In this document: piece after piece, positions 13,761 through 51,068 of the stretch
Numbering within the stretch: the stretch's first letter is position 1
How the letters are laid out: every line of letters begins with the position of its first letter
DNA from: Guillardia theta CCMP2712
Lineage: Eukaryota; Protista; Cryptophyta
DNA: 59,770 bases
Direction: 5' to 3'
Assembly: GCF_000315625.1 (NCBI RefSeq)
Contig: NW_005434628.1
Location: forward strand, 103,003 to 162,772
The notes under the pieces: model-generated
The model's database searches: none
Seen by the model: the letters and a program-made list of their open reading frames with translations, nothing else
Told to the model about the DNA's origin: nothing
Program-made: the position numbers and the translations under genes

Positions 13761-14121
13761 CGACAAGCCATGGCATCGGCGAATCGCCGGAGATGAAGGC
13801 GCCGGGAGCAGGAGCAGGAGAAGGAGCAGGAGAAGGAGAAGGAACAGGAGAAGGAGCATGAGCAGGAGTCACAGGAGCATGAGCAGGAGTCACAGGAGCA
13901 CGAGAGCTTGAGGAGCAGCCCAGAAGTCGGAGCAGTCGCCGGGACTCGCCGACGACCGTCCCGGACGGTACGGTAGTCCGATCAGCCTGAGCAGTCGGAG
14001 CAGTCGGAGCAGTCGGAGCAGTCGGAGCAGGAGCAGAAGCAGGAGCAGGAACAGAGAGGGCCCGAGCAACGCCGGTGGAGCTCCCCGGGAGCGAGCCCGG
14101 AGGACGAGGGAGGGAGGAGGG

Positions 14122-18488: not shown

Positions 18489-18855
18489 GGCCAGGTTCAG
18501 TTCATATCTAAACAATCATTTCTGCCATTTCACGCACTTTCCTTATTACTCCTTCCTACCACCCCAACCTCACTCTTTGACAATAACTCGGAGTCGATGA
18601 TACTCCACCTTCTCCAGAGAGCATCGTTCTTTTTCTCTCTATCCCTTTTCTCTCCGTATCCTCATACTCGCGCTTCCTCTCTCTCGTACCACGTTGTGGT
18701 TGTCTCCCTGCTACTCCCTCCTCCTTCCCGGCCCTCTCTCCCTCCTCTCCCTCCCCAGGCTCCCTCCTCCATCGCCCCATCTGATCCCTTCGACCTCCTC
18801 CGACAACTGCTTCAGTACCCCTTCTCACCCGTTCACTCGGAGTTCCGAACCCCAC

Positions 18856-19078
18856 CCGGTACCCCCCGGTAGCCCCCGGTAGCCCCCGGTACCCCCGGTA
18901 GCCCCCGGTAGCCGCCGGTAGCCGCCGGTAGCCCACAACCCCCTGATCACCCCCACTTGTAATATGACCCCAGTAGTTCCGTCACCCACCCACCCTCCCT
19001 CCGGCCCTCCGAGCGTCCCCCCGAGTCGTAGTACCACCCCCATCGTAGTACCACCCCCATCGTAGTACCACCCCCATT
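18856..19078. repeat. Two minisatellites in a C-rich tract: ~10-bp CCCCGGTAGC (~8 copies) and 17-bp TCGTAGTACCACCCCCA (3 copies)
   Basis: Direct reading of 18856-18933 and 19026-19078. Confidence 0.85.
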
Positions 19079-19119
19079 GTCGATCAAAATTATCAGTTCA
19101 AGGGAAGGAAGTTCCTTCC

Positions 19120-19640
19120 TCCTTCTGGCCAGACCGGCGGGCCCGGGGGTCACGGGGGGCCGTCCGAGCTCGGAGGGGCCGGGCCGCGGGCGTCCGTCGG
19201 ACCGTCACTGCCGGTACCCGCCGTTCACCGTGGAACTGCCGCTCAGCGGCTGTCGGAGTGCGTTGAACGGTGAGACTGGCTGAAACCGCCGCCGGGCGGG
19301 CCCGGGCTCAGCCCGCCACCGCACTCCGGCTGGCCCACCACAGTGAGTGACTTCATAGCGTTCACGGCCGGGCCCGTTGAGTCGCCGCCCGGGGCTGCGC
19401 GGCACTGCGGCACCGGCACTGCCGCAGCGGCTCTCAGTGCCATTACAAGTTACCGTAGTACCCGGCCGCATCGTACTCAGTGTGACGAGGCCGCGCCGCG
19501 GCGCGCTCAACTTATCAATAATTGACTGAGTCAGGAGATAGTTGAGTGACTAGGCTACCGGGACTGGGAGGCCCCCGTTGGCCCCGCCTGTACAGTACCG
19601 TACGGTCATCAGGCCCGGCCCGGCTGTACTAGTAAATTGA
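19120..19640. promoter_or_regulatory. CG/GACTC-rich island upstream of GDPD copy 1
   Basis: Dense CCGG, GGCC, GTAC and GAGTC words, between divergent genes and preceded by a C-rich tract. Confidence 0.45.
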
Positions 19641-19685
19641 TTAGAGCCAGAGGAGGGTTGGCCCGCACTTGCCCTCCCAGTCTCC

Positions 19686-21667
19686 ATGCCGACAGACCAT
19701 GGCAGGGAACTGGAGGCGCTGGTGGCTGCGGCGAGGGAGGAGGGAGGAGCAGAAGAGGTAGGTTGGAAGGATGTTGACGTGGAACGAGCGATGCCGGAGA
19801 AGAGAGACGCGAGGAGGACCTCTCTCTCATTCTGCACACTCTTCCTTTTCTTCTCCTCGTCGGTCACCCTTGCTTTCCTGTTGGGCTGGAAGCTTCGTGC
19901 CTACGTGTTCAACTACCACCGGGCAGACGTTGGAGCTCGTGCCTGGTACCTTGCAGACAGGCTTCTGGACGAGTCCTCAGTCTCGGCAGCAGAGCTGCAG
20001 TCAGAAAGCTACCAGGGACGACTATGGAGGCTAAGGAGCCTGAGCAGTAAACTGACATGGGACAAGTGCCTGAGCCCAATGAAGCGAGATGAGCGCTCGA
20101 TCGCTCATCGTGGCGCGCCTCTCATGTTCCCAGAGCACACGCTTGAAGGATACACCAGCGCTGTAAGGATGGGTGCTGGTGAGATTGGGCATGGGGCGTG
20201 GGGCAGTCGTTGACGGTGCGAGCAGGGATGCTGGAGTGCGATGCTGTGTTCACAAGGGACAGAGTTGCTGTCTGTCGCCATTCGGCCTGTGACCTCCACT
20301 ATACGACCAACATCCTGAGGGTGCCGGCGCTCGCGGACAAGTGCGACAAGAAGGTGAGGCATTCCAAAACCCCCGACGGCTGTTGAAGGTGGGAGACAGT
20401 TCCAACCCGGAGAGGGAGCGCGGTGCTGCACCACCGATCTGCTTGCATCGGAGTACAAGCAGCTGTGCGGGACCATGGAGGTGACCCTGCCTGCTCCTGC
20501 CTGCTCCTGCCTGCTCCTGCCTGCTCCTGCCTGCTCTGTGACGCCAATTAGATGATGACAAACGTCGGCGCCCGTACGGTGGACGAGTACCTGTCCGTCC
20601 CTTCCTGGCGGACGACTCTCTATCAGGTCTGCGTGTGGCACCAATCGACCTTGTCCTCGTGATCGCCGCTCAGGACGGAGGATGTGCCACTGTGATGACG
20701 CAGAAGGAATACATCCAACTCTCCATGTGAACCTGTCTTGTCTTGTGTCTTGGTTGTTGCAGTCTGACAGGCAAGGGGAAGGGAGATGAAGGTCAAGATG
20801 ATCCCGGAGCTGAAGGAGCACGACTACTCCAAGATAGACATACGTGAAAGCTGCCATCTGCCGTCTTTCCGTTGTGAGAGACTCTTCAGACTCCCAAGAT
20901 GAGGCGGCGGATCGTTTCATCCAAGACTACCTTGACCTTGGGGTCCCACCTTCTTTGCTGTTCCCTCAGACTTTCAGCAAGCAGCATGCGACAAGGTTCT
21001 CTGCTGACTCTGAGCAAGCGTCCTCCAGCTCATCTGCTGTAGGTGGCTGTCCAAGTATCCCATAGCAAAGAACACGGTTCTGTTGTATAGTCCCGGGGGG
21101 CAGGTGGAACTCTCGGTAGTTCCTCGATCTCGCTCCATCTTACATGTTAGGAGCAGAACGGGAAAGACACCTGGGAGACGACGTACAAGGGATGGTTTGA
21201 AGAGCTGCAGCGCCTGGGTCAGCCCATCAAGTTCGCCGGACTTCCGCTCAACGAGGTCATATCGGCCAATGACGCGCTTGGGGGCTCTTTCTCTCCCACA
21301 GAGCCGGTCAGGTACGCCTGCTGCGGGTGTTTGCGATCGCCGTACTGACCAAGAGCAGGTACCTCAAGGAGCAAGGGATAGAGATCATCGTGTGGACGCT
21401 GGAGAGGTCGGGAGCCGTTCCTAGTGGGTGGTACCTCGGTGTCCAACAGGGGAACGCCAGCACGGGAACGCACGGGAACGTTCAGAGTGCGGTGAGGAAG
21501 GATGCGGACATCTACTTGCTTCTCGATGTACTCTTCAAGGTTTGTGCATCCTAGCTGTCTACCTCTCCCGTCCCCGACTGAGTGCTCTTCAGGAGGTGGG
21601 AGTCTATGGGGTCTTCTCGGATTGGCCTGGGACCGTGACCCACTACCTCAACTGCGCCCTCCCCTAA
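19686..21667 (+). CDS. Glycerophosphodiester phosphodiesterase (GDPD), intact copy 1, with N-terminal membrane anchor; multi-exon
   Basis: [27 protein letters not shown]|[64 protein letters not shown] segment [22 protein letters not shown]. Confidence 0.93.
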
Positions 21668-23614
21668 GGAAAGCACACAGGCTGACTTGGGACATTCTCA
21701 CATCCCCTGTACTACGTGACTTTATCTGCCACTCAGTGTGAGGCAACTCATGGTGGTATGAACTGAGTCGAGATCATGAGCTTAAACTTGGACTCTTCAC
21801 CGTGACTTGCAACCGTCTGGGAACTCACTCGCTGTGACTCCATCATGACGGTATTAGCAACTCAGACGGTCGGAGTGCCACGGTGACTGATACGTACTGA
21901 TACTTTGATCATATGGTCCTACGGTAAACTTGGCAGACGGTGAGGCCGCCCACTGGGCCAGGCTGGGCCCGCCCCCGGGCGCCGCAAGCGCCGCCGGCCC
22001 CGAGGCTTTCAACTGGCAAGTGTACTACGGTAGTCGGCTCTCGGATCCGATGATGAAGGCTAATCACTCGGCAATGTACCGCGGTGATCGGACCGTTGCC
22101 GGGGCGGCCCAGGCCGCCACGTTGCCATCTGATTACACTTAACACCTCCACTGAGTTGCGGCCTCGGAGGCTGCTGCTGCTGCGGCGGCTACGCGTGACC
22201 CAGTGACTCAGCCGTGCCACGAGCCTGCCGGGGGCTGGACAGCTTCTGACTTGCCACGTGACTATGCACGACTCATCTCAGTCTGACTCTCTGAGGTGAT
22301 CGGATAGTAAGTTCATCCAGAAGAGTCTGCGACTCAGTGACTCGCTGGGCCCTCGGTCTGACCGTCTGTTCGAGGCCGGTGGCTTGACCTGCAGCCGCGT
22401 GACTAGTCACAGAGTCAGTGGTCTTACTAAGACCTGAGGCCCTCGGACGGTCGCTCCGGATCTCTCACTCCGGTTCAACGGTTAGTCACGGCTGAGACTC
22501 TGACCGGGGCTCCATCGTGACCTGCCAACCCACCCTCAGTACCGTAACGGGTACGGTCACCCTGGTGCCACGGTGAGTCATCATGTCAACTTGGTCACAA
22601 GGCACCCCTGTGACTCGGAGATCTTGCGGAACTTGAAAGGCTTCCCTTTCAATCCCTGAGACGAGAGTCCGATCCCCTTCAACGTACCGGTCATGATCTC
22701 AAAACGAGACTCAGACATAAAAAGGTTAGGTCAGGGCCATGGTACAGGAGGGACCGGGCTAAGGCTTTCGCACTAGTACTTGTATTATAAGATCTTAGCT
22801 GTAGAGGCGGGGGGAGCTAAGGCAGAAGGAGAGCCGCCCGTGACCTGGAGAGGAGGAAAACCGACCAGCCTTTTGAGGCCCTTGTGACTGTTAAGAAGGG
22901 GGTCCTTTCGAGTGGGAAAAGGGGGGGTAGAGGATCACAAGGATCTGTATCGGTCTTATCTCACCACGAGTATGGGAGGGTTTTTAGCGCAAGGCAGGTA
23001 GAAGGGGAGGGGGTAGGGGTAGATGGATCTGATTGGGGGTAGAGTCCTGGGGGGTGGTACACCATGGGTCAAAGAGGTGGGTATTTCATGCGACAGCAGG
23101 GGATGATAGTTCGATCCCTTTCAGAGGTGGGGTGGCTATCTGGGTGGCTATGGAACGTTCTGGTTCGTCGGTGTAGGTAGGGGTGGTGATTTGTCTCTGA
23201 GGCGGACTGGAGACCCCCTTATACCGCTTAACTCCTGCCTGCGCCTGCTTTAACTGAGACCTCGTCTCCCTCCCCTCACCTTTATCTCCCCTGCCTGCAC
23301 ACAAACCTACCCACTCCACACCCTCCTCCTCCTCCTCCTCGTCCTCCTCCTCGTCCTCCTCCTCGTCCTCCTTCTTGTTGATTGATTGTTTCCTTCTTGG
23401 TATGACCGCCAACCTCCTCACCCCTAGCGAGAACAACATGCACCGTCAGTGTACTCTTCCTTGCTCCCAACCGGCTTCCCGCTCGTTCTGCCTTGAGCAG
23501 CAGAGACAGCGCCGCAAGAGCTGGATGAGAGGAGCGTTTTCCACTAGCTGTGCCAGCATGGCAGTCACGGAGGGAGATAACGGGCCCATAATCACGCTCA
23601 CCAATCAGGCATGC

Positions 23615-23821
23615 TGTTAGGGATTGACAATCCTGATGATGCTCTTTGACTCTGTGAACTTGAACCACCTTGTTAACTGGTTTAACAAGCAAACAAGAAC
23701 CTCAACACAACCGCGCTCTCTGAACGTGTGGAAAGTTAGGATAGCTTTTTATTGTCCAACCGATAGGATAAAGTAAGCTAGTTAACTGAAGTATACGTAA
23801 CCGCTTAGGTAACTCCTATCA
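23615..23821 (-). repeat. 3' LTR (207 bp)
   Basis: TGTTAGGG...CTCCTATCA on the + strand, identical to 29160-29366; AATAAA on the minus strand. Confidence 0.97.
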
Positions 23822-23875
23822 TTACGCTCCCAAGCGCACCATCATCTGAGAAACATCTCGATGAACTTCGCTGCG

Positions 23876-26800
23876 TCAGGAATTAGTATTAGTCAAATTA
23901 AACTCACGAATCAATTGACGAAGAAACGGCGTCGTCAATTCACGAAACGACAACCAAGAATCAGACGCAGGATTATCATAACCCTTCCATCTGATCAAGT
24001 ACTGCACACGACGACCTTTCCCACGACGAGCCAAGATTCGATCCACTTCGTAAAACTCACCATCCGAACGCACGATGGGATCAGGCGGTGCAACCTTTGT
24101 GTTGAAACACTCATCACGAATATGATACGGTCGAAGCTTCGAAACGTTGAACACGGTGTTCTTCAAACGCTGAAACCTGGATGTCAACTCCAACTTGACT
24201 GTGCTGTCAGAAACCTTCTCCACAATTGTGAAGGGACCCACAAAACGCAACATCATCTTGGGTACTGTCTCTGGCAACTTCAAGTCCTTCGTAGACAACA
24301 TCACCTTGTCTCCAACCTTGTATTCGTAAGATCTTCGCTGTTTTGACAACCTTCTTTCTGTATCAATCGCTGCAATAGTCATCGAATCTCGAGCAACGTC
24401 AAGTGCCGTCATGATATTTTCACGAATAGAATCAACGTCCTCGCACAAATCCATGACAGAAAAATCAACCACAGTCCTAATCTCACGACCATAAATGATC
24501 TCGAATGGAGTTAAGCCTGAAGCATTGCGTACTGTAGAATTCCAAACAGTCTCTAAATGAGTCAGATAAACATCCCATGTCTTGTGAGGATACTTCATGC
24601 AGAAGATTCGTAACGCGTCCACAATCACGCTGTTGAATTTTTCAACTCTGCCATTCGATTGGGGATAGTACACACTGGAATGTCGAATATCAATTCCCAT
24701 TAAGCTGAAAACTTCGTCCCAAAATGTTGAATTGAAAATGCTTCCATTGTCAGACAAGATTTGCTTGCAAATCCCCTGGTTTCTGTACACAGTCTCGAAA
24801 AACCCACGCGCTGCTTGTTTCGACGTGATAGACTTCTTACACGGGTACAAGAAGACTCTTCCTGAAAAATGATCAAGAAACACCAAGACGGAGTCATTGC
24901 CCTTCTTGGACACCGGCAATCCTGACAAAAGATCAACGCTGATCTTCTCAAAACGCTCCTTTGGAATCGCATGACTATGGGGAACTGCAACAGAACGTTG
25001 TTTGAAACTCTTGGCTTGCAAGCATTCCTCACAAGAATTGACGTATGCGAGAATGTCTGCGTTCATCCTTGGCCAAAATGCGAGTCTTGTTGCTCTCAAG
25101 ATAGTCTTTGATTTGCCCCCATGACATGAGTGATCATGTACCAGTTCAAGGAATTTTCCTCTAGCGTCTTCTGGTATGCAAACTCGTTCTCTTCCTAAAG
25201 TATCATGAAAAATCAACACGCCATCTTTCAAATAGAACGATTTGCTCTCCATGTGAGTTCGACGATTCTGTCGTATCCCTTCGAGAATTGACTTGAAGTA
25301 CGTTGACTTCTCGTATCCTTCACGAACAAGGTCCAACATTGCGTTCTTGTTGAAACCAATGTCCATTGTTGCTTCATTCCTGACCATCTCTGTGCTTGTT
25401 GTACAAACACACAACACTGATGGATCGAGATTGAGAAGGTCCGCACGCTCTTCAAATTCTTTCTCGAGCTCCTCATGATTCTGAACTTCACTGTTCTCGT
25501 TAGGTCGAGACATGAAATCAGCAATTTTGTTGTCTTCGCCTGGTATGTATTTCACCTCCGCCAACTGGAAATCTGCCAAGATTTGAACCCATCGAAAGAG
25601 ACGACCTTGCAAATTCTTCTGCGACAACAAATATTGCAAGCTGTTGTGATCCGTATGAACAGTCACTTTGTGCCCATAGGTGTAATACTGGAAATACAGC
25701 AAGGCACTGATTAATCCAAGACATTCCTTCTCACGTGTACTGTAATTCAGTTGAGCTGAAGACAATCGTTTGCTAAAATACGCGACAGGAAGATAATCAT
25801 CTGCATGCTTTTGCGTCAACGCTGCGCCAATACAAGTTTGAGAAGCGTCCACGAACAAATGTGTCTCTTTCGACGAATCGAAGTACGCCAACACAGGTGC
25901 GGAGCTCAAACACTTTTTAAGTTGTTCAAAAGCTGTCTGATGTACCGTCAACCATTCAAACCTTGCATTCTTGCGTAGCAAATCCAGCAAAGGTAGGACA
26001 ACGCTCGTATATCCTGGTACAAACTTCCTATAAAAATTCGTTACTCCTAGAAACGATTTCAACTCTTTCACAGTAGTGGGCGCTGGACGAGCTAACATCG
26101 CGTCCACCTTGTCAATTTGTACAGTGATGCCTTGTTCATTGATTCTGAAACCCAAGAAATCGATCTCTTGTGCAAAGAAATTACATTTCTTCTTTTTCAC
26201 GAACAATTTCTCCTCTCTGAAGCGCGTGAGCAAGCGACGAATCAATTGTTCATGTTGCTCCAATGTACCATATGAAACTATCACGACGTCGTCCACGTAG
26301 CAGAAACAATTATCTATTCCAGTCAACACACTCTCTAAGAACTTTTGAAACTGATTGCCTGAATGTATCAAGCCGAATGGAAGTCTCGTAAACTCGAACT
26401 TGCCCAACTTTGTTATGAAACATGTAATATGTCGATGATCAGGGTTCACTTCAAGCTGCCAAAAAGAACGAGCCAAATCCGCGTTGCTGATAAATAATCG
26501 CGCATTCTTCACATTCGAATACTTTTGTCGTTCTCGTTGAATAGTACGACCGATCTTCTCTGCTAGCTCTGAAATTAACGGAAGTGGGAAATTGTCATGC
26601 CGCACTAGGTCATTCACAAAGCGTAAATCAGTACAAAATCTCAGGCTGCCATCGCTCTTCCTTGTGAAGATGATCGGAGACGCGAACTCGGAACTGCTCG
26701 GTTGAATGATACCACGTTCGAGCAGGTACGTGATCGTCTCCTTCAGAGGCTCTTCAAGAGACAACGGCAAGGGATATGGTTTCTTTTGTACCGGTTTTGC

Positions 26801-27493
26801 CCCTTCCTTCAAGGCTATCTGAGCTTTAAACTTGCGGTTTAATTCCACCCCAATAGGTATCTCGTCCACCAAGACGTCCTGAAATTGTTGCATAATATTT
26901 TCGACCCTCTGCTGGATCAAATCATCAGGCGAAGAGGAATCCTGCACTGCAGATTGTATCACGACCTGATACCATTCTCCCCCCTGCCGAATATCATGCT
27001 CCACTTCTTTTGAAGTCACCATTTGACACAAATTCGTCACGCTTTCGTCATGACTTCCTTTCTTTCGCAAGCATGTAGGCAAATTTACCACACTGTCATT
27101 GTATCGTGCGTAAACGCGAAAAGTCTCCGTGTCAAGATGAATCTTGTTCCTGTGCATCCAATCGTAGCTTAAAATCACGTCTGCATGTTTGATATCCAGA
27201 ACGTGAAGCGTTGTTTTGCTGCGAAATGTACTACCAATCCGAAATTTTGTGCCGAGTATCTCTGTGGAATATTTGATGGTCCCATCTGCCATGCTGACGG
27301 AAAGAACATGATCCTTTGCCTGCTGGCTCTGCAAACCAACGCGTCTCATACATTCCGCTGAGATGAAATTCGCTTCTGCCCCACTGTCCAACAGCGCAAT
27401 TAAAGTAAACGTCCTCCCCATTACATCAATCTCAATCGGTACGCACGGCAACTCGTACGTTTGAACTGTACTTGTCATCTTGCACACCACCAC
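23876..27493 (-). CDS. pol: Retrotransposon Pol: aspartic protease, reverse transcriptase, RNase H, integrase, chromodomain
   Basis: LLDSGA (PR); LPFGL and YVDD (RT); VDAS..YSTREKE..TDH (RH); HSCH..CEEC, SVDL, SDNG, NGRVE (IN); GPF; YEVDRILARR..QYLIRWKGY (chromo). The frame stays open upstream to ~27646. Confidence 0.97.
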   Translation of the reverse strand: MVVCKMTSTVQTYELPCVPIEIDVMGRTFTLIALLDSGAEANFISAECMRRVGLQSQQAKDHVLSVSMADGTIKYSTEILGTKFRIGSTFRSKTTLHVLDIKHADVILSYDWMHRNKIHLDTETFRVYARYNDSVVNLPTCLRKKGSHDESVTNLCQMVTSKEVEHDIRQGGEWYQVVIQSAVQDSSSPDDLIQQRVENIMQQFQDVLVDEIPIGVELNRKFKAQIALKEGAKPVQKKPYPLPLSLEEPLKETITYLLERGIIQPSSSEFASPIIFTRKSDGSLRFCTDLRFVNDLVRHDNFPLPLISELAEKIGRTIQRERQKYSNVKNARLFISNADLARSFWQLEVNPDHRHITCFITKLGKFEFTRLPFGLIHSGNQFQKFLESVLTGIDNCFCYVDDVVIVSYGTLEQHEQLIRRLLTRFREEKLFVKKKKCNFFAQEIDFLGFRINEQGITVQIDKVDAMLARPAPTTVKELKSFLGVTNFYRKFVPGYTSVVLPLLDLLRKNARFEWLTVHQTAFEQLKKCLSSAPVLAYFDSSKETHLFVDASQTCIGAALTQKHADDYLPVAYFSKRLSSAQLNYSTREKECLGLISALLYFQYYTYGHKVTVHTDHNSLQYLLSQKNLQGRLFRWVQILADFQLAEVKYIPGEDNKIADFMSRPNENSEVQNHEELEKEFEERADLLNLDPSVLCVCTTSTEMVRNEATMDIGFNKNAMLDLVREGYEKSTYFKSILEGIRQNRRTHMESKSFYLKDGVLIFHDTLGRERVCIPEDARGKFLELVHDHSCHGGKSKTILRATRLAFWPRMNADILAYVNSCEECLQAKSFKQRSVAVPHSHAIPKERFEKISVDLLSGLPVSKKGNDSVLVFLDHFSGRVFLYPCKKSITSKQAARGFFETVYRNQGICKQILSDNGSIFNSTFWDEVFSLMGIDIRHSSVYYPQSNGRVEKFNSVIVDALRIFCMKYPHKTWDVYLTHLETVWNSTVRNASGLTPFEIIYGREIRTVVDFSVMDLCEDVDSIRENIMTALDVARDSMTIAAIDTERRLSKQRRSYEYKVGDKVMLSTKDLKLPETVPKMMLRFVGPFTIVEKVSDSTVKLELTSRFQRLKNTVFNVSKLRPYHIRDECFNTKVAPPDPIVRSDGEFYEVDRILARRGKGRRVQYLIRWKGYDNPASDSWLSFRELTTPFLRQLIREFNLTNTNS

Positions 27494-27585
27494 TTCTCTT
27501 TTTTCTATTTCTGGAGGTACTTCTGAATCAAATATAGTTGATTCTGAAGGATCTCGGTCGCCCGTCCCCTCCGCGAGAGACGACC

Positions 27586-29061
27586 TCAGGGGTTTGACTT
27601 CTTGCTTTCGGTAGCCAACGGACAGACCTTTTTGAAATGCCCGTACTTACCACAAAGAAAACACTTCGGTCCCCTATCAGATTTCTTCTCCTCAGGACCT
27701 TTTTGTCCCGGTTTTGCGTCTTTACCATTAATCGCATTCACTGTCTTATGTCCGACATGGCTTCGTTCTTGTGAAGACGAGGTGAATGATCGTACCACGC
27801 TCAAAGCTTTCGCTTCTCGATAAAGCTCAGGCAGGAAACTACCGACGTTGATTGACGATCCAGCATTTTCTTTTTCAAGCGAGAGTAACAACTTCCTCGC
27901 AAAACTCGCGGTTACCTCATTCGATAAGTTCTGCACGAAGTGTCGTTCTAACCCAAATTTGGTACACGCGGTGCTTACATATTCCGCCTCGTTCTCCGCC
28001 GTCATGCAACAGGCAATGTAATGATTTGCCAACGAAGAGAATCGGTCAACGAAGTTGTTGATCTTCTCTTTGCTTCCTTGCCTCGTGTACGAAATCTGAT
28101 TCAAGATACTCTGAACCTGGGAGTACGGAAGATATTCTGCGACCATGATTTTCTTAAATTCCTTCCATGGACCATGCTCAACCGCTTCTTTGTCGTCCCC
28201 TCTTAAGGTCAACATCCAATTCCGCACTCTGTTTCCTACCAATGTGGTGGCAATATCTACCTGTTGGTCACTAGGAACCCTTTGTCGTTGAAATTGAAAC
28301 TCAAGTTCTCCAAACCAACTGGCAACGGAATACTCTAGAGTCATTTCTCCATTAAATCGAGAAATATCCGTGGAATGAAACTTCACTAAGGGAGTTGGCT
28401 TGACAAAACGATTTGACACATCAACATGTAACGTCGTCGACATGCTCGAATCACCGTTTTGCATGCATGCTGTATCGGCCCCTCCTGCTGCCTTGACCGG
28501 AAGGCGTTGAATTGCATCTGGTTCACTTGATCTGAACATTTGCCTCATTTCCTCGAACATTTTTCTACTTTCTTCCTTGAAGGCGGAAAATGCTTCCTTT
28601 GTCTCTGAGAGCTCCCTTGCTTCACGAGACCTCTCTTCCTTAACGGAAGCTTCATACTTTCCTTTCATGTCCATTGCGAGTTGCAGTTCTTCTCGCAATT
28701 TCTTGTTTGCAGTGATCAATTCTTCAAACTGCTGTGATTCGAACCTCAGGGTCGAACCTGCCGGAGACGCGATCCTTGAAATTTCAAAGTCTACTGCGTC
28801 ATCCCCGTCGCGCACTGGTTGCGTGACCGATCCATCATAAGAAGGTATATTAATCCTCGAAAATCCCGCGACGTCTCGCTGATTTCCGTTCGGGTCCTCT
28901 TCTGAGGTAGAAGGTACCGTCGTAACTTCCCTCATCGTCTTGTCTTCAGACGTTTCCTCATCGAAACTCCTTCTAAAGTTGTCAAGCATGACTGCCAAGC
29001 CTGAACTTCCAAGAGGACCATCTCCAGGAGACCTTCTTATCCTTTCTACATCCGATTGCAT
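27586..29061 (-). CDS. gag: Retrotransposon Gag with CCHC zinc knuckle
   Basis: 491-aa ORF with capsid-like WKEFKK..QGSKEKINNFVDRF and zinc knuckle CFLCGKYGHFKKVC. Confidence 0.93.
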   Translation of the reverse strand: MQSDVERIRRSPGDGPLGSSGLAVMLDNFRRSFDEETSEDKTMREVTTVPSTSEEDPNGNQRDVAGFSRINIPSYDGSVTQPVRDGDDAVDFEISRIASPAGSTLRFESQQFEELITANKKLREELQLAMDMKGKYEASVKEERSREARELSETKEAFSAFKEESRKMFEEMRQMFRSSEPDAIQRLPVKAAGGADTACMQNGDSSMSTTLHVDVSNRFVKPTPLVKFHSTDISRFNGEMTLEYSVASWFGELEFQFQRQRVPSDQQVDIATTLVGNRVRNWMLTLRGDDKEAVEHGPWKEFKKIMVAEYLPYSQVQSILNQISYTRQGSKEKINNFVDRFSSLANHYIACCMTAENEAEYVSTACTKFGLERHFVQNLSNEVTASFARKLLLSLEKENAGSSINVGSFLPELYREAKALSVVRSFTSSSQERSHVGHKTVNAINGKDAKPGQKGPEEKKSDRGPKCFLCGKYGHFKKVCPLATESKKSNP

Positions 29062-29147
29062 ATCCAGAGGTTACCGTTCAAGTTCCTTTTCGATCAAATC
29101 AAATCAAATTGTCGCAATCCGCAATTTCTTCAAACAAAAACCAAACC

Positions 29148-29159
29148 TTACGCTACCAA
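29148..29159 (-). other. Primer-binding site, TTGGTAGCGTAA (tRNA-iMet-like TGGTAGCG)
   Basis: Immediately internal to the 5' LTR. TGG is complementary to the tRNA CCA end, and TGGTAGCG equals the 8-nt yeast Ty3 PBS. Confidence 0.75.
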
Positions 29160-29366
29160 TGTTAGGGATTGACAATCCTGATGATGCTCTTTGACTCTGT
29201 GAACTTGAACCACCTTGTTAACTGGTTTAACAAGCAAACAAGAACCTCAACACAACCGCGCTCTCTGAACGTGTGGAAAGTTAGGATAGCTTTTTATTGT
29301 CCAACCGATAGGATAAAGTAAGCTAGTTAACTGAAGTATACGTAACCGCTTAGGTAACTCCTATCA
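29160..29366 (-). repeat. 5' LTR (207 bp)
   Basis: Identical to 23615-23821. Confidence 0.97.
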
Positions 29367-29954
29367 CATGCCCAGCATGGCTCCTCGGCGTGGTATGCAA
29401 GGGACCTCAGTTCCGCTCCATCGACCAGCAAGGAAATCTTACTGCTGGTGGAGCATACGAGAGGCTCGGAAAGAACGCCCGGGCCTCACTCCACAAGTCT
29501 ATCGGCCCTGATGGGAACTTTACCAACATCAAATTCCCCATGTTCCATCGTAAGACAGGCGGCGGTGAAATGCAGCAAAGCGACCTGCACGGAGAGGAGA
29601 TCAGCGAGGACACCTTGGCATACGACGAGGCATATGAAGACGAGCTGTCAGGCCGGTTCTACTTAGAGTAGAGAATGGATGCTTGCGATCCGGTTGCGTG
29701 TAGTGCTTGTTCTTGCCAAGTTGGTGTAGATTCTTGTTTGTAATGTAATGAAGTTCAAAACTACCTGATGTTCGAGAACGCAGTGCAAGCGCACCAACGG
29801 TGAAGAGAACACGCAGTCTACCATTCCAGTACCTATGCGCATACTAACAATGACGCCTAGCATTACCGTAGTGGCCTGCCCTCTACCGTGAGTCCGAGTG
29901 ATCCTATCAACGGTCAGATAGGCTTCACCGTGCTGCCACAGCGGTTGACGCGTT

Positions 29955-31811
29955 GAGGTAGGTTGGAAGGATGTTGACGTGGAACGAGCGATGCCGGAGA
30001 AGAGAGACGCGAGGAGGACCTCTCTCTCATTCTGCACACTCTTCCTTTTCTGGAAGCTTCGCGCCTACGTGTTCAACTACCACCGGGCAGACGTTGGAGC
30101 TCGTGCCTGGTACCTTGCAGACAGGCTTCTGGACGAGTCCTCAGTCTCGGCAGCAGAGCTGCAGTCAGAAAGCTACCAGGGACGACTATGGAGGCTAAGG
30201 AGCCTGAGCAGTAAACTGACATGGGACAAGTGCCTGAGCCCAATGAAGCGAGATGAGCGCTCGATCGCTCATCGTGGCGCGCCTCTCATGTTCCCAGAGC
30301 ACACGCTTGAAGGATACACCAGCGCTGTAAGGATGGGTGCTGGTGAGATTGGGCATGGGGCGTGGGGCAGTCGTTGACGGTGCGAGCAGGGATGCTGGAG
30401 TGCGATGCCGTGTTCACAAGGGACAGAGTTGCTGTCTGTCGCCATTCGGCCTGTGACCTCCACTATACGACCAACATCCTGAGGGTGCCGGCGCTCGCGG
30501 ACAAGTGCGACAAGAAGGTGAGGCATTCCAAACCCCCCGACGGCTGTTGAAGGTGGGAGACAGTTCCAACCCGGAGAGGGAGCGCGGTGCTGCACCACCG
30601 ATCTGCTTGCATCGGAGTACAAGCAGCTGTGCGGGACCATGGAGGTGACCCTGCCTGCTCCTGCCTGCTCCTGCCTGCTCTGTGACGCCAATTAGATGAT
30701 GACAAACGTCGGCGCCCGTACGGTGGACGAGTACCTGTCCGTCCCTTCCTGGCGGACGACTCTCTATCAGGTCTGCGTGTGGCACCAATCGACCTTGTCC
30801 TCGTGATCGCCGCTCAGGACGGAGGATGTGCCACTGTGATGACGCAGAAGGAATACATCCAACTCTCCATGTGAACCTGTCTTGTCTTGTGTCTTGGTTG
30901 TTGCAGTCTGACAGGCAAGGGGAAGGGAGATGAAGGTTAAGATGATCCCGGAGCTGAAGGAGCACGACTACTCCAAGATAGGCATACGTGAAAGCTGCCA
31001 TCTGCCGTCTTTCCGTTGTGAGAGACTCTTCAGACTCCCAAGATGAGGCGGCGGATCGTTTCATCCAAGACTACCTTGACCTGGGGGTCCCACCTGCTTT
31101 GCTGTTCCCTCAGACTTTCAGCAAGCAGCATGCGACAAGGTTCTCTGCTGACTCTGAGCAAGCGTCCTCCAGCTCATCTGCTGTAGGTGGCTGTCCAAGT
31201 ATCCCATAGCAAAGAACACGGTTCTGTTGTATAGTCCCGGGGGGCAGGTGGAACTCTCGGTAGTTCCTCGATCTCGCTCCATCTTACATGTTAGGAGCAG
31301 AACGGGAAAGACACCTGGGAGACGACGTACAAGGGATGGTTTGAAGAGCTGCAGCGCCTGGGTCAGCCCATCAAGTTCGCCGGACTTCCGCTCAACGAGG
31401 TCATATCGGCCAATGACGCGCTTGGGGGCTCTTTCTCTCCCACAGAGCCGGTCAGGTACGCCTGCTGCGGGTGTTTGCGATCGCCGTACTGACCAAGAGC
31501 AGGTACCTCAAGGAGCAAGGGATAGAGATCATCGTGTGGACGCTGGAGAGGTCGGGAGCCGTTCCTAGTGGGTGGTACCTCGGTGTCCATCAGGGGAACG
31601 CCAGCACGGGAACGCACGGGAACGTTCAGAGTGCGGTGAGGAAGGATGCGGACATCTACTTGCTTCTCGATGTACTCTTCAAGGTTTGTGCATCCTAGCT
31701 GTCTACCTCTCCCGTCCCCGACTGAGTGCTCTGCAGGAGGTGGGAGTCTATGGGGTCTTCTCGGATTGGCCTGGGACCGTGACCCACTACCTCAACTGCG
31801 CCCTCCCCTAA
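29955..31811 (+). pseudogene. GDPD copy 2: 5'-truncated, with an in-frame 36-nt deletion in the TM segment; catalytic exons intact
   Basis: Lacks the copy-1 promoter and first codons. [17 protein letters not shown] becomes FLFWK. The remainder is near-identical and could start at ATG 29991. Confidence 0.75.
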
Positions 31812-33583
31812 GGAAAGCACACAGGCTGACTTGGGACACCCTCACATCCCCTGTACTTTACCTGCCACTCAGTGTGAGAAGCTCATGGTGGTATGAACTG
31901 AGTCGAGATCATGAGCTTAAACTTGGACTCTTCACCGTGACTTGCAACCGTCTGGGAACTCACTCGCTGTGACTCCATCATGACGGTATTAGCAACTCAG
32001 ACGGTCGGAGTGCCACGGTGACTGATACGTACTGATACTTTGATCATATGGTCCTACCGGCGGTAAACTTGGCAGACGGTGAGGCCGCCCAGTCCGGGCC
32101 CGCGCCCGGGCGCACTGCGCGGCACACTGAGCGCCGCCGGCCCCGAGGCTTTCAACTGGCAAGCGTACTACGGTAGTCGGCTCTCGGATCCGCTGATCAT
32201 TGTGAAGGCTAATCACTCGGCAATGTACCGCGGTGATCGGACCGTTGCCGGGGCGGCCCAGGCCGCCACGTTGCCATCGGATTACACTGTGACTTAACAC
32301 CTCCACTGAGTTGCGGCCTCGGAGGCTGCTGCTGCTCAGTGCTGCCGGGCGGCGCCCGGCCGGGCGGCGGCGGCGGCGGCTACGCGTGACCCAGTGACGC
32401 AGCCGTGCCACGAGCCTGCCGGGGGCTGGACAGCTTCTGACTTGCCACGTGACTATGCACGAAGTCTGACTCTCTGAGGATCATCCAGCCTTGAAGAGAC
32501 CGTACCCCGGGTGGCTCGGACCTCGGCCCGGCTGACCGTCTGTTCGAGCTCAAGTTGCCACGGTTGACTCCCAGGCTGTTCGCCTTGGGGGGCCGCTTGA
32601 CCTGCTGCCGCGTGACCGACTAGTCACAGAGTCCTCAGAGCCACAGATTCAGTGGTCTTAAGAGACCTGAGGCCCTCGGACGGTCGCTCCGAGTCCGGAT
32701 CTCTTACTCTGTTAGTCACCGGGCCAAGACTCTGCCACGGTGACCGGGGCCGCCCGGCTCCATCGTGACCTGTCAACCCTCAGTACTGTCACGTCACCCT
32801 GGTGAGTCATCATGTCAACTTGGTCACAAGGCAGCTACGGTGAGTCATCATGTCAACTTGGTCACAAGGCACCCCTGTGACTCGGAGATCTTGCGGAACT
32901 TGAAAGGCTTCCCTTTCAATCCCTGACGAGAGTCCGATCCCCTTCAACGTACCGGTCATGATCTCAAAACGAGACTCAGACATAAAAAGGTTAGGTCAGG
33001 GCCATGGTACAGGAGGGACCGGGCTAAGGCTTTCGCACTAGTACTTGCCAGTATTATAAGATCTTAGCTGTAGAGGCGGGGGGAGCTAAGGCAGAAGGAG
33101 AGCCGCCCGTGACCTGGAGAGGAGGAAAACCGACCAGCCTTTTGAGGCCCTTGTGACTGTTAAGAAGGGGGTCCTTCGAGTGGGAAAAGGGGGGGTAGAG
33201 GGTCACAAGGATCTGTATCGGTCTTATCTCACCACGAGTTGAGAGGGTTTTTAGCGCAAGGCAGGTAGAAGGGGAGGGGGTAGGGGTAGATGGATCTGAT
33301 TAGGGGTAGAGTCCTGGGGGGTGGTACACCATGGGTCAAAGAGGTGGGTATTTCATGGGACAGCAGGGGATGATTGTTAGATCCCTTTTAGAGGTGGGGT
33401 GGCTATGGAACGTTCTGGTTCGTCGGTGTAGGTAGGGGTGGTGATTTGTCTCTGAGGCGGACTGGAGACCCCCTTGTACCGCTTAACTCCTGCCTGCGCC
33501 TGCTTTAACTGAGACCTCGTCTCCCTCCCCTCACCTTTATCTCCCCTGCCTGCACTCAAACCTACCCACTCCACACCCTCCTC

Positions 33584-33618
<35 letters not shown>

Positions 33619-33668
33619 GGTCCTCGTCCTGGTCCTCCATCTCGTTGATTGATTGTTTCCTTCTTGGC

Positions 33669-34181
33669 ATGACCGCCAACCTCCTCACCCCTAGCGAGAA
33701 CAACATGCACCGTCAGTGTACTCTTCCTTGCTCCCAACCGGCTTCCCGCTCGTTCTGCCTTGAGCAGCAGAGACAGCGCCGCAAGAGCTGGATGAGAGGA
33801 GCGTTTTCCACTAGCTGTGCCAGCATGGCAGTCACGGAGGGAGATAACGGGCCCATAATCACGCTCACCAATCAGGCATGCCCAGCATGGCTCCTCGGCG
33901 TGGTATGCAAGGGACCTCAGTTCCGCTCCATCGACCAGCAAGGAAATCTTACTGCTGGTGGAGCATACGAGAGGCTCGGAAAGAACGCCCGGGCCTCACT
34001 CCACAAGTCTATCGGCCCTGATGGGAACTTTACCAACATCAAATTCCCCATGTTCCATCGTAAGACAGGCGGCGGTGAAATGCAGCAAAGCGACCTGCAC
34101 GGAGAGGAGATCAGCGAGGACACCTTGACATACGACGAGGCATATGAAGACGAGCTGTCAGGCCGGTTCTACTTGGAGTAG
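33669..34181 (+). CDS. Orphan 170-aa hypothetical protein, copy 2
   Basis: ORF MTANLL...GRFYLE kept open in the uninterrupted copies and located downstream of an island plus G-tract. No family recognised; a short intron in the 5' part is possible. Confidence 0.55.
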   Translation: MTANLLTPSENNMHRQCTLPCSQPASRSFCLEQQRQRRKSWMRGAFSTSCASMAVTEGDNGPIITLTNQACPAWLLGVVCKGPQFRSIDQQGNLTAGGAYERLGKNARASLHKSIGPDGNFTNIKFPMFHRKTGGGEMQQSDLHGEEISEDTLTYDEAYEDELSGRFYLE

Positions 34182-34469
34182 AGAAAGGATGCTTGCGATC
34201 CGGTTGCGTGTACTCGTGCTTGTTCTTGCCGAGTTGGTGTAGATTCTTGTTTGTAATGTAATGAAGTTCAAAACTACCCGATATTCGAGAACGCAGTGCA
34301 AGCGCACCAACGGTGAAGAGAACACATGCACTCCACCATTGAAGTTCCTGTGCACATACTAATAATGATGCGCAGCATTACCGTAGTGGCCTTCCCTCTA
34401 CCGTGAGTCCGAATGATCCTAACATCGGTCAGATAGGCTTCACCGTACTGCCACGGCGGTTGACGCGTT

Positions 34470-35072
34470 GAGGTAGGTTTGAAGGATGTTGACGTGGAAC
34501 GAGCGATGCCGGAGAAGAGAGACGCGAGGAGGACCTCTCTCTCATTCTGCACACTCTTCCTTTTCTTCTCCTCGTCAGTCACCCTTGCTTTCCTGTTGGG
34601 CTGGAAGCTTCGTGCCTACGTGTTCAACTACCACCGGGCAGACGTTGGAGCTCGTGCCTGGTACCTTGCAGACAGGCTTCTGGACGAGTCCTCAGTCTCG
34701 GCAGCAGAGCTGCAGTCAGAAAGCTACCAGGGACGACTATGGAGGCTAAGGAGCCTGAGCAGTAAACTGACATGGGACAAGTGCCTGAGCCCAATGAAGC
34801 GAGATGGAGAGGTCGGGAGCTGTTCCTAGTGGGTGGTACCTCGGTGTCCAACAGGGGAACGCCAGCACGGCAACGCACGGGAACGTACAGAGTGCGGTGA
34901 GGAAGGATGCGGACATCTACTTGCTTCTCGATGTACTCTTCAAGGTTTGTGCATCCTAGCTGTCTACCTCTCCCGTCCCCGACTGAGTGCCCTGCAGGAG
35001 GTGGGAGTCTATGGGGTCTTCTCGGATTGGCCTGGGACCGTGACCCACTACCTCAACTGCGCCCTCCCCTAA
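34470..35072 (+). pseudogene. GDPD copy 3 with a ~1.3-kb internal deletion
   Basis: AAGCGAGATG is joined directly to GAGAGGTCGGG at ~34806, removing the HRG and ExD catalytic exons; the junction ORF stops at 34829. Confidence 0.9.
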
Positions 35073-37101
35073 GGAAAGCACACAGGCTGACTTGGGACAC
35101 CCTCACATCCCCTGTACTACGTGACTTTATCTGCCACTCAGTGTGAGGCAACTCATGGTGGTATGAACTGAGTCGAGATCATGAGCTTAAACTTGGACTC
35201 TTCACCGTGACTTGCAACCGTCCGGGAACTCACTCTCTGTGACTCCATCATGACGGTAGACTCCGATGGTCGGAGTGACTGATACGTACTGATTCTATGA
35301 ACATCCGATAGTACGGTACTACCGTGTACGGTAAATCAATCAGACGGACGGCCCGGGGTGCGGCCGGCGGGGGCCAGGCCGCCGCCGGCGGGGGCCAGGC
35401 CGGGCCCGGGGCCGCACCAGCGCCGCAGGCCTGTGGCTTTCGCACGGGCTAAGTCAGGCTCGGAATCGCCATGATGATCTGATCACTGCAGCAACGCCGT
35501 ACGGTAGTACGATCATTGCATCCGATCACACTTTACACCTCCAGTGGCGCCGGGCCCCGGCCCCCAGTGCCTGAGGCTGCTGCTGTTGCAGCAGCTACGC
35601 GTGACTCCGCAGTGGCTCGGACTCAGTAGCTGACTCAGCCGTGCCACGAGCCTGCCGACTCAGGGCTGGACAGCTTCTGACTTGCCACGTGACTATGCAC
35701 GAAGTCTGAGGCATCCAGACTATGCACGAAGTCTGAGGCATCTGCGACTCGCTTGCTGACTCTGATCGGAGCCTCCCCCGGCGGCCGGACGGCGGCGGAT
35801 CATCGTACCGTGGCTCGGACCGCGGCTGACGGGTCTGCCCGGTGCCAGTTCGAGTTCAAGTTGACTGGTCAGAAGTGCGAAGTTAGAGCGGCCGCCGGGC
35901 GGCGGGGCACGGACTCCACAGAGGATGGGGTAACGGATTGGGCTTCCGAGTGGCCCCCGCCGGGGGGCGCTTAACTCAGAGCTGCAGCCGCGTGACTATT
36001 CAGTGGTCTTAAGAGTGTCGCTCGATATCTCCGACTCTGCCGCCGCTGCCATGATTGGACGGTTATAACAGACCCAGAGACCCGGGGCTCGGACATCGTG
36101 ATCGGAGGCTTCGGTCACAAGGCCGACCCCCTTGCGTACCCGGTGGTATGGCGCCTGTACCGGACTCAGGCTCCGGGTCCCTCGAACCATGATCTCAAAA
36201 CGTGCCTCCGAGCCTCGGGAGTCAGGCATTAAAAGGTTCCAGCGTCGCTTTTGCAGGTTGGGCTGAGCCATGGCACAGGAGAGACCAGGCTAAGGCATTT
36301 GCACTAGTACTTGTATTATAAGATCTCAGCTGTAGAGGTGGGGGGGTCGAGGCCACCCCGGATAGAAGGAGAGCCGCCCGTGACCGTCGAAAATTGTTGG
36401 AGAGGAGGAAAACCAACCAGCCTTTTGAGGCCCTTGTGACTGTTAAGAAGGGGGTCCTTTCGAGTGGGAAAAGGGGGGGTAGAGGATCACAAGGATCTGT
36501 ATCGGTCTTATCTCACCACGAGTTGGGAGGGTTTTTAGCGCAAGGCAGGTACCAAGGGGAGGTAGGGGTAGATGGATCTGATTGGGGGTAGAGTCCTTGG
36601 GGGTGGTACACCATGGGTCAAGTAGGTGGGTATTTCATGGGAGAGCAGGGGATGATAGTCAAGATCCCTTTCAGAGGTGGGGTGGCTATGGAACGTTCTG
36701 GTTCGTCGATGTAGGTAGGGGTGGTAATGGATTAGGAGTACTCAGGGGGCAGCAGATCTGTTCTGTAATGATCCTTTCGAGACGTACGTAAAACTCCATT
36801 ACTGTCTTCCTTCTAGATAGATGGTATTGTCTGAGGCGGACTGGAACACCCCTTGTACCGCTTAACTCCTGCCCCGCGTGACCTGCTGACACTAAACCCA
36901 GCTTCGTCGTTTAATCCCTCGTCTCTCGCCTACTTAAAAACTGAGATCTCTTCCTTCCTCCCCTCACCTTCATCTCCCCTGCCTGCACACAAACCTACCC
37001 ACTCCTCCTCGTCCTCCTCCTCCTCCTCGTCCTCGTCCTCCTCCTCGTCCTCGTCCTCGTCCTCGTCCTCCTTCTTGTTGATTGATTGTTTCCTTCTTGG
37101 T

Positions 37102-37614
37102 ATGACCGCCAACCTCCTCACCCCTAGCGAGAACAACATGCACCGTCAGTGTACTCTTCCTTGCTCCCAACCGGCTTCCCGCTCGTTCTGCCTTGAGCAG
37201 CAGAGACAGCGCCGCAAGAGCTGGATGAGAGGAGCGTTTTCCACTAGCTGTGCCAGCATGGCAGTCACGGAGGGAGATAACGGGCCCATAATCACGCTCA
37301 CCAATCAGGCATGCCCAGCATGGCTCCTCGGCGTGGTATGCAAGGGACCTCAGTTCCGCTCCATCGACCAGCAAGGAAATCTTACTGCTGGTGGAGCATA
37401 CGAGAGGCTCGGAAAGAACGCCCGGGCCTCACTCCACAAGTCTATCGGCCCTGATGGGAATTTTACCAACATCAAATTCCCCATGTTCCATCGTAAGACA
37501 GGCGGCGGTGAAATGCAGCAAAGCGACCTGCACGGAGAGGAGATCAGCGAGGACACCTTGGCATATGACGAGGCATATGAAGACGAGCTGTCAGGCCGGT
37601 TCTACTTGGAGTAG
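37102..37614 (+). CDS. Orphan 170-aa hypothetical protein, copy 3
   Basis: Same 513-nt ORF as copy 2. Confidence 0.55.
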   Translation: MTANLLTPSENNMHRQCTLPCSQPASRSFCLEQQRQRRKSWMRGAFSTSCASMAVTEGDNGPIITLTNQACPAWLLGVVCKGPQFRSIDQQGNLTAGGAYERLGKNARASLHKSIGPDGNFTNIKFPMFHRKTGGGEMQQSDLHGEEISEDTLAYDEAYEDELSGRFYLE

Positions 37615-38896
37615 AGAATGGATGCTTGCGATCCGGTTGCGTGTAGTGCTGGTTCTTGCCAGTTGGTGTAGATTCTTGTTTGTAATGTAATGAAGTTCAA
37701 AACTACCTGATGTTCGAGAACGAAGTGCAAGCCTGAGCGCACCAACGGTGAAGAGAACACGCACTCTACCATTCCAGTACCTATGCGCATACTAACAATG
37801 ATGCCTAGCATTAGTACCGTACCGTATTGGCCCGGCCTGCCCTCTACCGTACCGTACAGTGAGTCCGAGTGATCCTATCAGCGGTCAGATAGGCTTCACC
37901 GTACTGCCACAGCGGTTGACGCGTTACGGCAGAAGATTCTTCTACCGTACGGTCAGCAAGCAACATTGACCGTGCCATGACCGTCCGACTCAGTGTTGCA
38001 CCGCGCGGCGCGGCCGCGGTTGGCCGGGCGATCATAGTAGTCTGAGGGTGTGCGAGGACAATAATGAGAGTCGAGGATGTCGTTTTTGCCCACTTCCACC
38101 CTGACGGACGGCCGGGCCCGGCCACCGGGCCCCGCCCCGCCGGTCCGACTCAGTCGGTGGCTCCCAACTTGCAAGCCGGCGGGCCCGGCTGCCAGTCTCA
38201 CAGTCCTTCTTTTCTCAAAGTTAAGTTAAAGATCAGTACGAGGACAATCAGGAGAGACGAGGAGGCTTGACCCTGACACTGTCGCACAGGCCAAACGGCG
38301 AGAAGAGAAAAGACAGCGAGAACCAAACTTGAAACCCAATCCTGCCGACTGCAGTGTCCCCCAAACTTAACTGACAGTCAGGGGAGTCGCGGCCCGCTCC
38401 GACTCGGCCGCGTGAAGTGACCGGACTTTCAAGTTGCTGAGTCGGGACTCCGAGGGTTAACTGAAATTCCGTGTCAAGTTTTGACCTATTGGTGTCACCC
38501 GAGGCACGCGAAGCGAGGGAGACTGACGGGGAGGACGAGGAGAATCTTGAGCGTGCGACGAGCGAGGCTGAGCTGGTGACGTTCATGGCCATGGAGGGAG
38601 AGCAACAAGAAGCAGTGACCGTCGGACTGTGCTCGTCCCCATGAACTGACGGGGTCAACAGCCGACGGACCGTCGACCAAGTGGGTCCACTTGGCAAAGG
38701 CCGGGCAGCAGCAGACGTGGAAGCGGGCCCGGGACTAGTTTAGAGAGGACAACTTGTGGGAGAAGCATCCTCTTGTGAGGTTTCAAGCCTGGGAGGGAGC
38801 AATTAGTTGAGTTGTGAAGAATTCTGATCCTGTGCAGCCTTGCATTCATTGCAAGTGGTCCAGAAGCCCTACAACTGAGGACGATAGGAAAGAAGA

Positions 38897-50846: not shown

Positions 50847-51068
50847 CCTCCTCCTCCTCCTCCTCCTCCTCCTCCTCCTCCTCCTCCTCCTCCTCCTCCT
50901 CCTCCTCCTCCTCCTCCTCCTCCTCCTCCTCCTCCTCCTCCTCCTCCTCCTCCTCCTCCTCCTCCTCCTCCTCCTCCTCCTCCTCCTCCTCCTCCTCCTC
51001 CTCCTCCTCCTCCTCCTCCTCCTCCTCCTCCTCCTCCTCCTCCTCCTCCTCCTCCTCCTCCTCCTCCT
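50847..51068. repeat. (CCT)n microsatellite, ~220 bp
   Basis: Uninterrupted trinucleotide run. Confidence 0.97.

Follow-up and report, generated by a model that had tools for sequence, protein, structure and literature searches.

Palindrome-rich, indel-prone islands between the genes of a tandemly repeated nuclear locus in the cryptophyte Guillardia theta

In the plastid genome (plastome) of Chlorosarcinopsis eremi, genes are almost unchanged and most non-coding insertions and deletions (indels) and substitutions are found within or beside short palindromic repeats; it has been proposed that these palindromes cause breaks, and that inaccurate repair then expands palindrome-rich DNA (Smith 2020, PMC7043297). 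In human non-repetitive DNA, indels are 16-19 times rarer than single-nucleotide polymorphisms, and insertions that do not arise by slippage are tied to pseudo-palindromes (PMC3638132). Inverted copies are known to be written both by template-switch mutation (PMC7954356, PMC8794818) and by the snap-back synthesis of DNA polymerase theta (Pol theta; PMC4912351, PMC5728401). Here, a window of 59,770 nucleotides from Guillardia theta CCMP2712 (contig NW_005434628.1, positions 103,003 to 162,772 of the forward strand) was analyzed, in which three tandem units each contain an island of approximately 1.2 kb that is made up for the most part of short odd palindromes with G or C at the centre and is unusually rich in indels. 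The closest published analogue appears to be the palindromic-repeat indel hotspots of the C. eremi plastome (PMC7043297), and the 'Jekyll and Hyde' plant mitogenomes may also be compared. Literature searches yielded no description of islands of G/C-centred odd palindromes in a nuclear genome, algal genomes included, an absence that is no proof of novelty.

By self-comparison of the window (self-BLAST), the three units (U1, U2, and U3) were found in tandem on the + strand, with the order GDPD-like gene, island, and an open reading frame (ORF) referred to below as the 'orphan'. The left part of U1 (19755-23614) comprises the GDPD-like gene and the island as well as the 5' part of the 'orphan' ORF, and matches 29955-33881 with 91% identity and 39 gap openings; its right part, the unit end, lies at 29360-29954 (29360-30263 matches 33868-34815 with 92% identity). 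U2 (29955-34469) is the only complete unit, and U3 (34470-37932) is without the equivalent of 20099-21353, that is, most of the GDPD-like gene. As in the C. eremi plastome, near-identical genes are accompanied by indel-riddled non-coding DNA, most of the changes occur within or beside short palindromes, and the elements involved are not transposons. The extra segments that distinguish the units are enriched in palindromes, as at organelle-type hotspots, and 2 indels fall in the 1.8 kb of the GDPD part compared with 41 in 1.3 kb of island. On the other hand, the spliced genes and the long terminal repeat (LTR) retrotransposon at this locus indicate that it is nuclear and not organellar. Unlike the plastome, it combines ordinary spliced genes with a Ty3/gypsy element, and its palindromes are confined to islands of 0.4-1.3 kb located between genes. 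These palindromes are also very short, with one central G or C, in place of the A/T-stem hairpins with 3-nt loops of C. eremi, and they belong to no sequence family, so that nothing like a hairpin repeat family is present.

When island bounds were set by the density of odd palindromes centred on S (G or C), the islands of U1, U2, and U3 extended over 21602-22816, 31774-33083, and 35007-36290. An earlier reading of the sequence alone (the original prediction) had placed them at 21850-22700, 31990-32960, and 35250-36240, with similar lengths of 851, 971, and 991 bp; islands indeed lie there, but palindrome density sets other borders. The U1 island contains 143 S-centred palindromes with arms of at least 2 (z 9 against dinucleotide shuffles), and their density is 0.205 per S compared with 0.066 across the window. 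A scan for this density alone recovered all three unit islands together with four further islands: one at 18726-19753, upstream of U1 and with the left breakpoint of the array at its edge, one at the right end of the array (37664-38592), an unrelated one elsewhere in the window (4038-4691), and one at 13763-14171. The first three of these four have a like grammar, and six to nine islands in the window share it. The islands are richer than their flanks in GC and CpG (0.58-0.66 vs. ~0.55). A region at 55171-55593 is also dense in G/C-centred odd palindromes; it has 44% GC, unlike the other islands, and overlaps a short tandem repeat at about 55260-55408.

The grammar of the islands can be written as a single rule for 5-mers, XY-S-Y'X', to which GACTC/GAGTC, GTGAC/GTCAC, ACGGT/ACCGT, and CCSGG all conform. 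With expectations taken from dinucleotide-preserving shuffles, all 16 arm classes of this rule were enriched in six window islands (573 observed vs. 185 expected, 3.1-fold, z 4.7-10.6), whereas the A/T-centred classes in the same six islands were not (115 observed vs. 115 expected, ratio 1.0). Inverted repeats with 3-bp arms were strongly enriched only at a spacer of 1 with a G/C centre (4.1-fold, z 17), compared with 1.3-fold at spacer 0 and 1.08-fold with an A/T centre; spacers 2-12 remained near 1 except for small excesses at spacer 4 (1.5-fold) and at 9 and 11 (1.3-fold). Arm lengths show a geometric decay in which each further step has a probability of approximately 0.4-0.5 (0.25 at random), and zigzag chains of the form A-S-A'-S-A occur 17 times (8.4 expected, p 0.005). 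No enrichment of odd palindromes was detected in the genes, introns, and retroelement of the window. Transcription-factor words, such as the AP-1-like TGA-S-TCA, can be ruled out as the main cause, since all 16 arm classes are enriched, with no sequence family common to the island palindromes.

Between U1 and U2, the island (31774-33083, 1310 bp) differs by 41 indels (31.3/kb, one per 32 bp) and 22 substitutions (16.8/kb). The adjoining non-coding segment (33084-33512, 429 bp), which contains no long ORF and lacks the high palindrome density, has 3 indels (7.0/kb) and 18.6 substitutions/kb; the island thus shows a 4.5-fold excess of indels (p 0.002) at a similar substitution density (p 0.69). 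Six indels (8.1/kb) and 12.2 substitutions/kb were counted in the 'orphan' part (33513-34251, 739 bp), and 2 indels (1.1/kb) and 4.9 substitutions/kb in the GDPD part (29955-31773, 1819 bp), where exons and introns together show very few differences. These counts agree with the original prediction, according to which GDPD exons, GDPD introns, and the 'orphan' ORF differ little and the islands carry about one indel per few tens of bp. The examples it quoted are also all present (CCGG at 32057, a 6-bp insertion at 32286, and a 17-bp extra segment at 32632), although the last, which had not been polarised, is more simply explained by a deletion in U1.

In a gap-tolerant pairwise alignment, the U1 and U2 islands consist of long perfect blocks interrupted by many short gaps. 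Over five gap-cost settings, the number of island indels was stable at 28-42 and that of substitutions varied from 22 to 91, for which reason clean events, with at least 5 matches on each side, were also counted. The island contained 10-12 clean indels and 6 clean substitutions, compared with 7-8 and 27 elsewhere (Fisher p 0.002-0.011), which gives indel:substitution ratios of approximately 2:1 and 1:3.5 that are robust to gap cost; substitutions, too, are somewhat elevated in the island, which should be considered when these counts are read. The U3 island is 77-78% identical to those of U1 and U2 on its left side, with 23-35 gap openings, and no BLAST alignment was obtained between its core (35702-36255) and that of U1 (22271-22723); the flanks are 91-99% identical. 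Approximately 35 of the 41 island indels lie outside Tandem Repeats Finder arrays and approximately 6 inside (by manual overlay), and slide or junction homology is 34 vs. 27 +/- 6 (p 0.16), on which grounds simple slippage in microsatellites or minisatellites can be rejected. Outside the islands, 20-bp and 3-bp indels are unit changes in a (CCTGCCTGCT)n array and a (TCCTCG)n-type array. The local excess of indels is therefore real and holds at equal substitution divergence.

One alternative is that the genic parts are kept alike by unequal crossing-over or gene conversion, while an island that was once heterologous escapes and simply shows an older divergence with an ordinary mutation spectrum. 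Conversion has acted at this locus, as indicated by branch lengths that are mosaic across segments and not clock-like (at the unit end, the U2 branch of 17 exceeds the U3 branch of 9). Substitutions rise from 4.9/kb in the GDPD part, which is about three times less diverged, to 12-19/kb downstream. At the island edges, U1 and U2 are identical over approximately 170 bp at the left edge and nearly so over approximately 180 bp at the right edge (one 2-bp indel), with sharp changes into the diverged core. In a zone sheltered from conversion, however, substitution divergence should rise in proportion to indel divergence, and it does not: the island is not above its neighbour in substitutions, and its clean indel:substitution ratio differs about six-fold from that elsewhere. 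Moreover, in the U1-U2 and in the U3 comparison alike, the zone left unconverted is the one dense in palindromes, and the exact duplications of 21-38 bp within the islands are very recent. Conversion alone does not account for an island whose indels reach 4.5 times the level of its non-coding neighbour when the two have equal substitution density. As a full account, this alternative is unlikely.

Just as unlikely is that mutation is uniform and that selection merely purges indels from exons, untranslated regions, and introns, the island being tolerant of them. In the 'orphan' part, most indels have lengths divisible by three, as expected of coding DNA, and presumed RNA contigs lack the island core, which would hence be free of transcript constraint. 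Nevertheless, the adjoining segment without a long ORF shows 4.5 times fewer indels at equal substitution density, the GDPD-like part, its exons and introns taken together, differs very little, and tolerance alone would predict neither palindrome-rich inserts nor exact, recent duplications with periods of 21-38 bp. Constraint contributes; the likeness of the flanks looks to be due partly to recent homogenisation in the GDPD part and partly to constraint in the coding part of the 'orphan'.

To determine the direction of change, events were polarised by inspection of the three-way alignment, with U3 as the outgroup wherever its flanks align. The tally was approximately 6 insertions and 5-7 deletions. 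The islands are thus indel-prone and not insertion-prone, and the description of them as insertion-hypermutable cannot be maintained. Insertions in U2 comprise 6 bp at 32286, 36 bp at 32337, 4 bp at 32614, and 4 bp at 33047, in addition to a tandem duplication at 32801-32871; the one insertion in U1 is of 8 bp at 22272. An 8-bp deletion at 31855 is assigned to U2, and U1 lost segments common to U2 and U3 of ~6-11, 8, and 6 bp and probably also of 17 and 27 bp. The 36-bp insertion (32337-32372) is absent from U1 and U3 and forms a fold-back zigzag (forward-reverse-forward), with a 17-bp odd palindrome (centre 32352) and, after it, an even one of 14 bp. In the duplication at 32801-32871, derived in U2, two exact 33-bp copies are spaced 38 bp from start to start; U1 has a single copy at 22572-22604, and U3 a single diverged counterpart. 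As had been claimed, both this duplication and that at 35691-35742 are exact, the latter having a period of 27 bp and being derived in U3, and a third exact one with a period of 21 bp was listed in the U3 island at 35363-35402.

Several single events fit short-range template switching. A perfect 15-bp odd palindrome centred on C (22427) was derived in U1 at 22420-22434, where U2 and U3 keep an imperfect 14-bp form; a fold-back after GTGACT at 22398-22409 is common to U1 and U2 and differs from U3; and the 36-bp insertion at 32337 is of the same kind. At 32055-32065, all three units are different and each is palindromic, with a 7-bp TAC-G-GTA in U1, an 11-bp TACCG-G-CGGTA in U2, and approximately 15 bp more in U3. 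The end of U3 that abuts the next island (37797-37932) carries 13-bp and 10-bp micro-duplications of the ACCGT type that are not present in the U1/U2 counterpart, and a further 6-bp insertion is found near 37730, approximately 70 bp upstream of them. In a palindrome of the form ATC-N-GAT, the centre base is T in U1 (22130), G in U2 (32279), and C in U3 (35523), and palindrome centres may be hotspots of substitution.

The composition of the extra segments was compared with that of shuffled inserts. They are enriched in palindromes (265 vs. 222 +/- 16, p 0.003) and in local matches in direct orientation (184 vs. 118 +/- 12, p < 0.003). The original prediction had stated that inserted words are the island's own vocabulary, which is right insofar as the segments are palindrome- and local-match-enriched, but what is shared is one rule, XY-S-Y'X', and not a list of words. 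Its proposal of a localised process with templated micro-insertions gains support from the local excess and the direct templates, and not from inverted templates (p 0.09) or junction microhomology, which is not raised.

Short, complex, and palindromic events might also be the footprints of cut-and-paste transposons, whose repeated insertion and excision with hairpin-ended flanks would leave palindromic scars and small duplications. Excision of hAT-type elements nicks one base into the flank, which would produce a one-base hairpin tip, and the exactly one central base of the island palindromes matches such a tip. However, no DNA transposon, terminal inverted repeat, or regular length of target-site duplication was seen in or near the islands, the duplication periods are 21, 27, and 38 bp and not a fixed 8 bp, and a G/C-only centre would demand a strict target preference. 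Transposon footprints are therefore considered quite improbable.

Independent sequence data were also available. Contigs from four sources were compared with 29900-34500: a run of 2011, a 2021 run from a separate study, an aquatic metagenome of 2023, and an RNA run of 2026. The U2 form of the most indel-rich part (32440-32830) was found with 0 differences in contigs of X1 (2011) and X4 (2021), other contigs, from X1, X4, and X6, carry the U1 form and show just the differences of 8, 4, 6, and 6 bp that were expected, and the 2023 metagenome carries both island forms in parts. Although three 100-N scaffold gaps and near-identical units invite collapse or mis-polishing, an error of assembly or consensus in GC-rich repeats is hardly credible and can be taken as largely ruled out: the indels reach 36 bp of complex sequence, both island forms were recovered unchanged in 2011 and 2021 contigs, and the U3 deletion joint was recovered as well. 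An exact 24-mer scan of the metagenome contigs detected no orthologous or population copy, and since the forms in the 2021 run and in the 2023 metagenome are those of the window itself, no population contrast is available from them. With regard to transcription, presumed RNA contigs hold words from 31800-32100 and none of the U2 island core (32100-32950), and reads of the RNA run (approximately 6% of it) give thin cover at 31748-32055. On this weak evidence, the island core appears not to be transcribed.

Taken with the indel rate per base, approximately 4-5 times that of neighbouring non-coding DNA of equal substitution age, these observations make a local, indel-prone process in palindrome-rich islands the reading that we favour, at somewhat better than even confidence. 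The islands would turn over mainly, and in both directions, through short indels (1-36 bp in length), exact tandem duplications whose periods are 21-38 bp, deletions, and complex fold-backs. Palindrome-rich, structure-prone DNA may stall or break and may be restored by error-prone synthesis with template switching, either through alternative end joining of the Pol theta or synthesis-dependent microhomology-mediated end joining (SD-MMEJ) type or through replication-associated short-range template switching. Such synthesis would delete sequence and also write new direct and inverted copies, by which the islands could renew their palindromic make-up while the exact sequence drifts. Pol theta also produces small tandem duplications, and duplications of this kind occur here. 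The breaks, the polymerase, and a promoter or origin function are what we infer.

Each of these routes resembles the locus in part. Deletions, direct and inverted templated insertions, and iterative snap-back products are also found in Pol theta and SD-MMEJ scars (PMC4912351, PMC5728401, PMC2943611), and the zigzag insertion at 32337 resembles repeated Pol theta snap-back; unlike in such scars, junction microhomology is not raised, and inverted templating from the flanks is a trend only. As in template switching and quasi-palindrome correction, single complex events such as that at 22420-22434 create or perfect reverse-complement arms, and as in small human insertions of FoSTeS type (fork stalling and template switching; PMC3638132), insertions not due to slippage go with pseudo-palindromes. 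Template-switch mutations, however, are rare and scattered genome-wide, whereas the signature here is concentrated 3-4-fold in islands and has a strict one-base G/C centre, and, unlike in quasi-palindrome correction, substitutions show no palindrome-building trend. The islands are also reminiscent of CpG-island-like promoter islands in that they are intergenic, richer in GC and CpG than their flanks, and adjoin gene starts: the island at 18726-19753 lies before, and ends just past, the ATG (19686) of the GDPD-like ORF in U1. They differ in being defined by dyad symmetry around a single G/C and not by CpG content, and the in-unit island is located 3' of the GDPD-like gene; any promoter role is putative.

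Several results weigh against a local indel-prone process. The evidence amounts to a few dozen events in the three copies of a single locus. Some of the reference DNA probably encodes protein (its indels being mostly multiples of three), which lowers its indel count, and the mosaic branch lengths mean that conversion has been at work as well. Inverted templating from the flanks is a trend only (138 vs. 121 +/- 12, p 0.09), and junction microhomology is at the random level (34 vs. 27 +/- 6), which is unexpected for classical microhomology-mediated joining; 9 events have at least 2 nt of junction homology (6.7 +/- 2.3 expected, p 0.21). Substitutions that perfect palindromes can be rejected, with 18 polarised substitutions giving -25 vs. 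-29 expected and no signal. Within the window, the 13-, 17-, and 27-bp extra segments are without a donor of at least 12 nt, and for the 36-bp segment, no such donor was found except its own palindromes. No strain-level variation was seen among the 2011, 2021, and 2023 data in the island contigs, which implies that the indel rate is high on an evolutionary and not a laboratory scale. Finally, the mechanism gives no reason for the G/C-only palindrome centre.

A more specific and much more tentative idea is that a dedicated, region-specific nuclear process writes short fold-back copies via a single G/C into open intergenic DNA, so that promoter-side islands are created and continually rewritten by repair synthesis, and not by point mutation and selection. 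We regard it as doubtful. If true, it would be the nuclear equivalent of the proliferation of palindromes in organelles, and the turn of the fold-back would have an enzymology of its own.

In U3, the deletion is approximately 1.25 kb, with its joint at window 34815/34757 (30253 to 31544 in U2 terms), and this joint is present in a contig of the independent 2021 run X4. A Ty3/gypsy chromovirus of 5.7 kb (23615-29366, - strand; Pfam protease, reverse transcriptase, RNase H, integrase, chromodomain, and gag) interrupts U1 and splits its 'orphan' ORF. The two LTRs (23615-23821 and 29160-29366) have 207 bp each and are 100% identical, suggesting a very recent insertion. The GDPD-like gene of U2 spans approximately 29950 to 31810; two consecutive open frames (29949-30374 and 30347-30547) align with the Pfam GDPD profile over its positions 1-24 and 24-55, each match alone being weak and under the curated Pfam cut-off. 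Downstream of the U2 island, the 'orphan' ORF (33513-34178) has no family match. Its inter-unit indels are mostly multiples of three (12, 3, 3, 3, 3, 12, and 3 between U1 and U2), and for this reason it is probably a real coding region, as judged from sequence, with a Ser/Asp/Glu-rich low-complexity stretch; the indels of this region (33513-34251 and 23322-23372) sit in (TCCTCG)n / (CCT)n arrays.

Both ends of the array coincide with edges of palindrome-dense islands (18726-19753 and 37664-38592), and the segmental duplication itself may have arisen from a break in islands joined via microhomology. The 8-mer GCAGAAGA is found at both original array flanks (19749-19756 and 37929-37936). Among the self-BLAST matches listed outside the array, only the microsatellite type was present, with no replicate duplicate pair. 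Several islands are flanked by long microsatellite tracts of CT/GA type whose strand skew is extreme (3868-4040, 8360-8555, 50778-51089, and others), and the scaffold gaps lie at 6983-7082, 48928-49027, and 51685-51784. A 645-aa ORF at 14122-16059 has one close relative (a Joint Genome Institute (JGI) protein, 73% identity) with LRR and U-box type Pfam domains and, beyond it, distant LRR matches only.

The strict one-base G/C centre provides a sharp sequence signature that any mechanism must account for and that can be searched for in other genomes. With these islands, the view of palindromes as the source of their own mutational hotspots would be extended from organelles to a nuclear genome. 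If the pattern is genome-wide, regulatory and intergenic islands of this lineage would evolve by indels and fold-back copying, unlike the rest of the genome, which would bear on the alignment, dating, and comparison of promoters and would offer a natural system for template-switch and alternative end-joining mutagenesis at defined sites.

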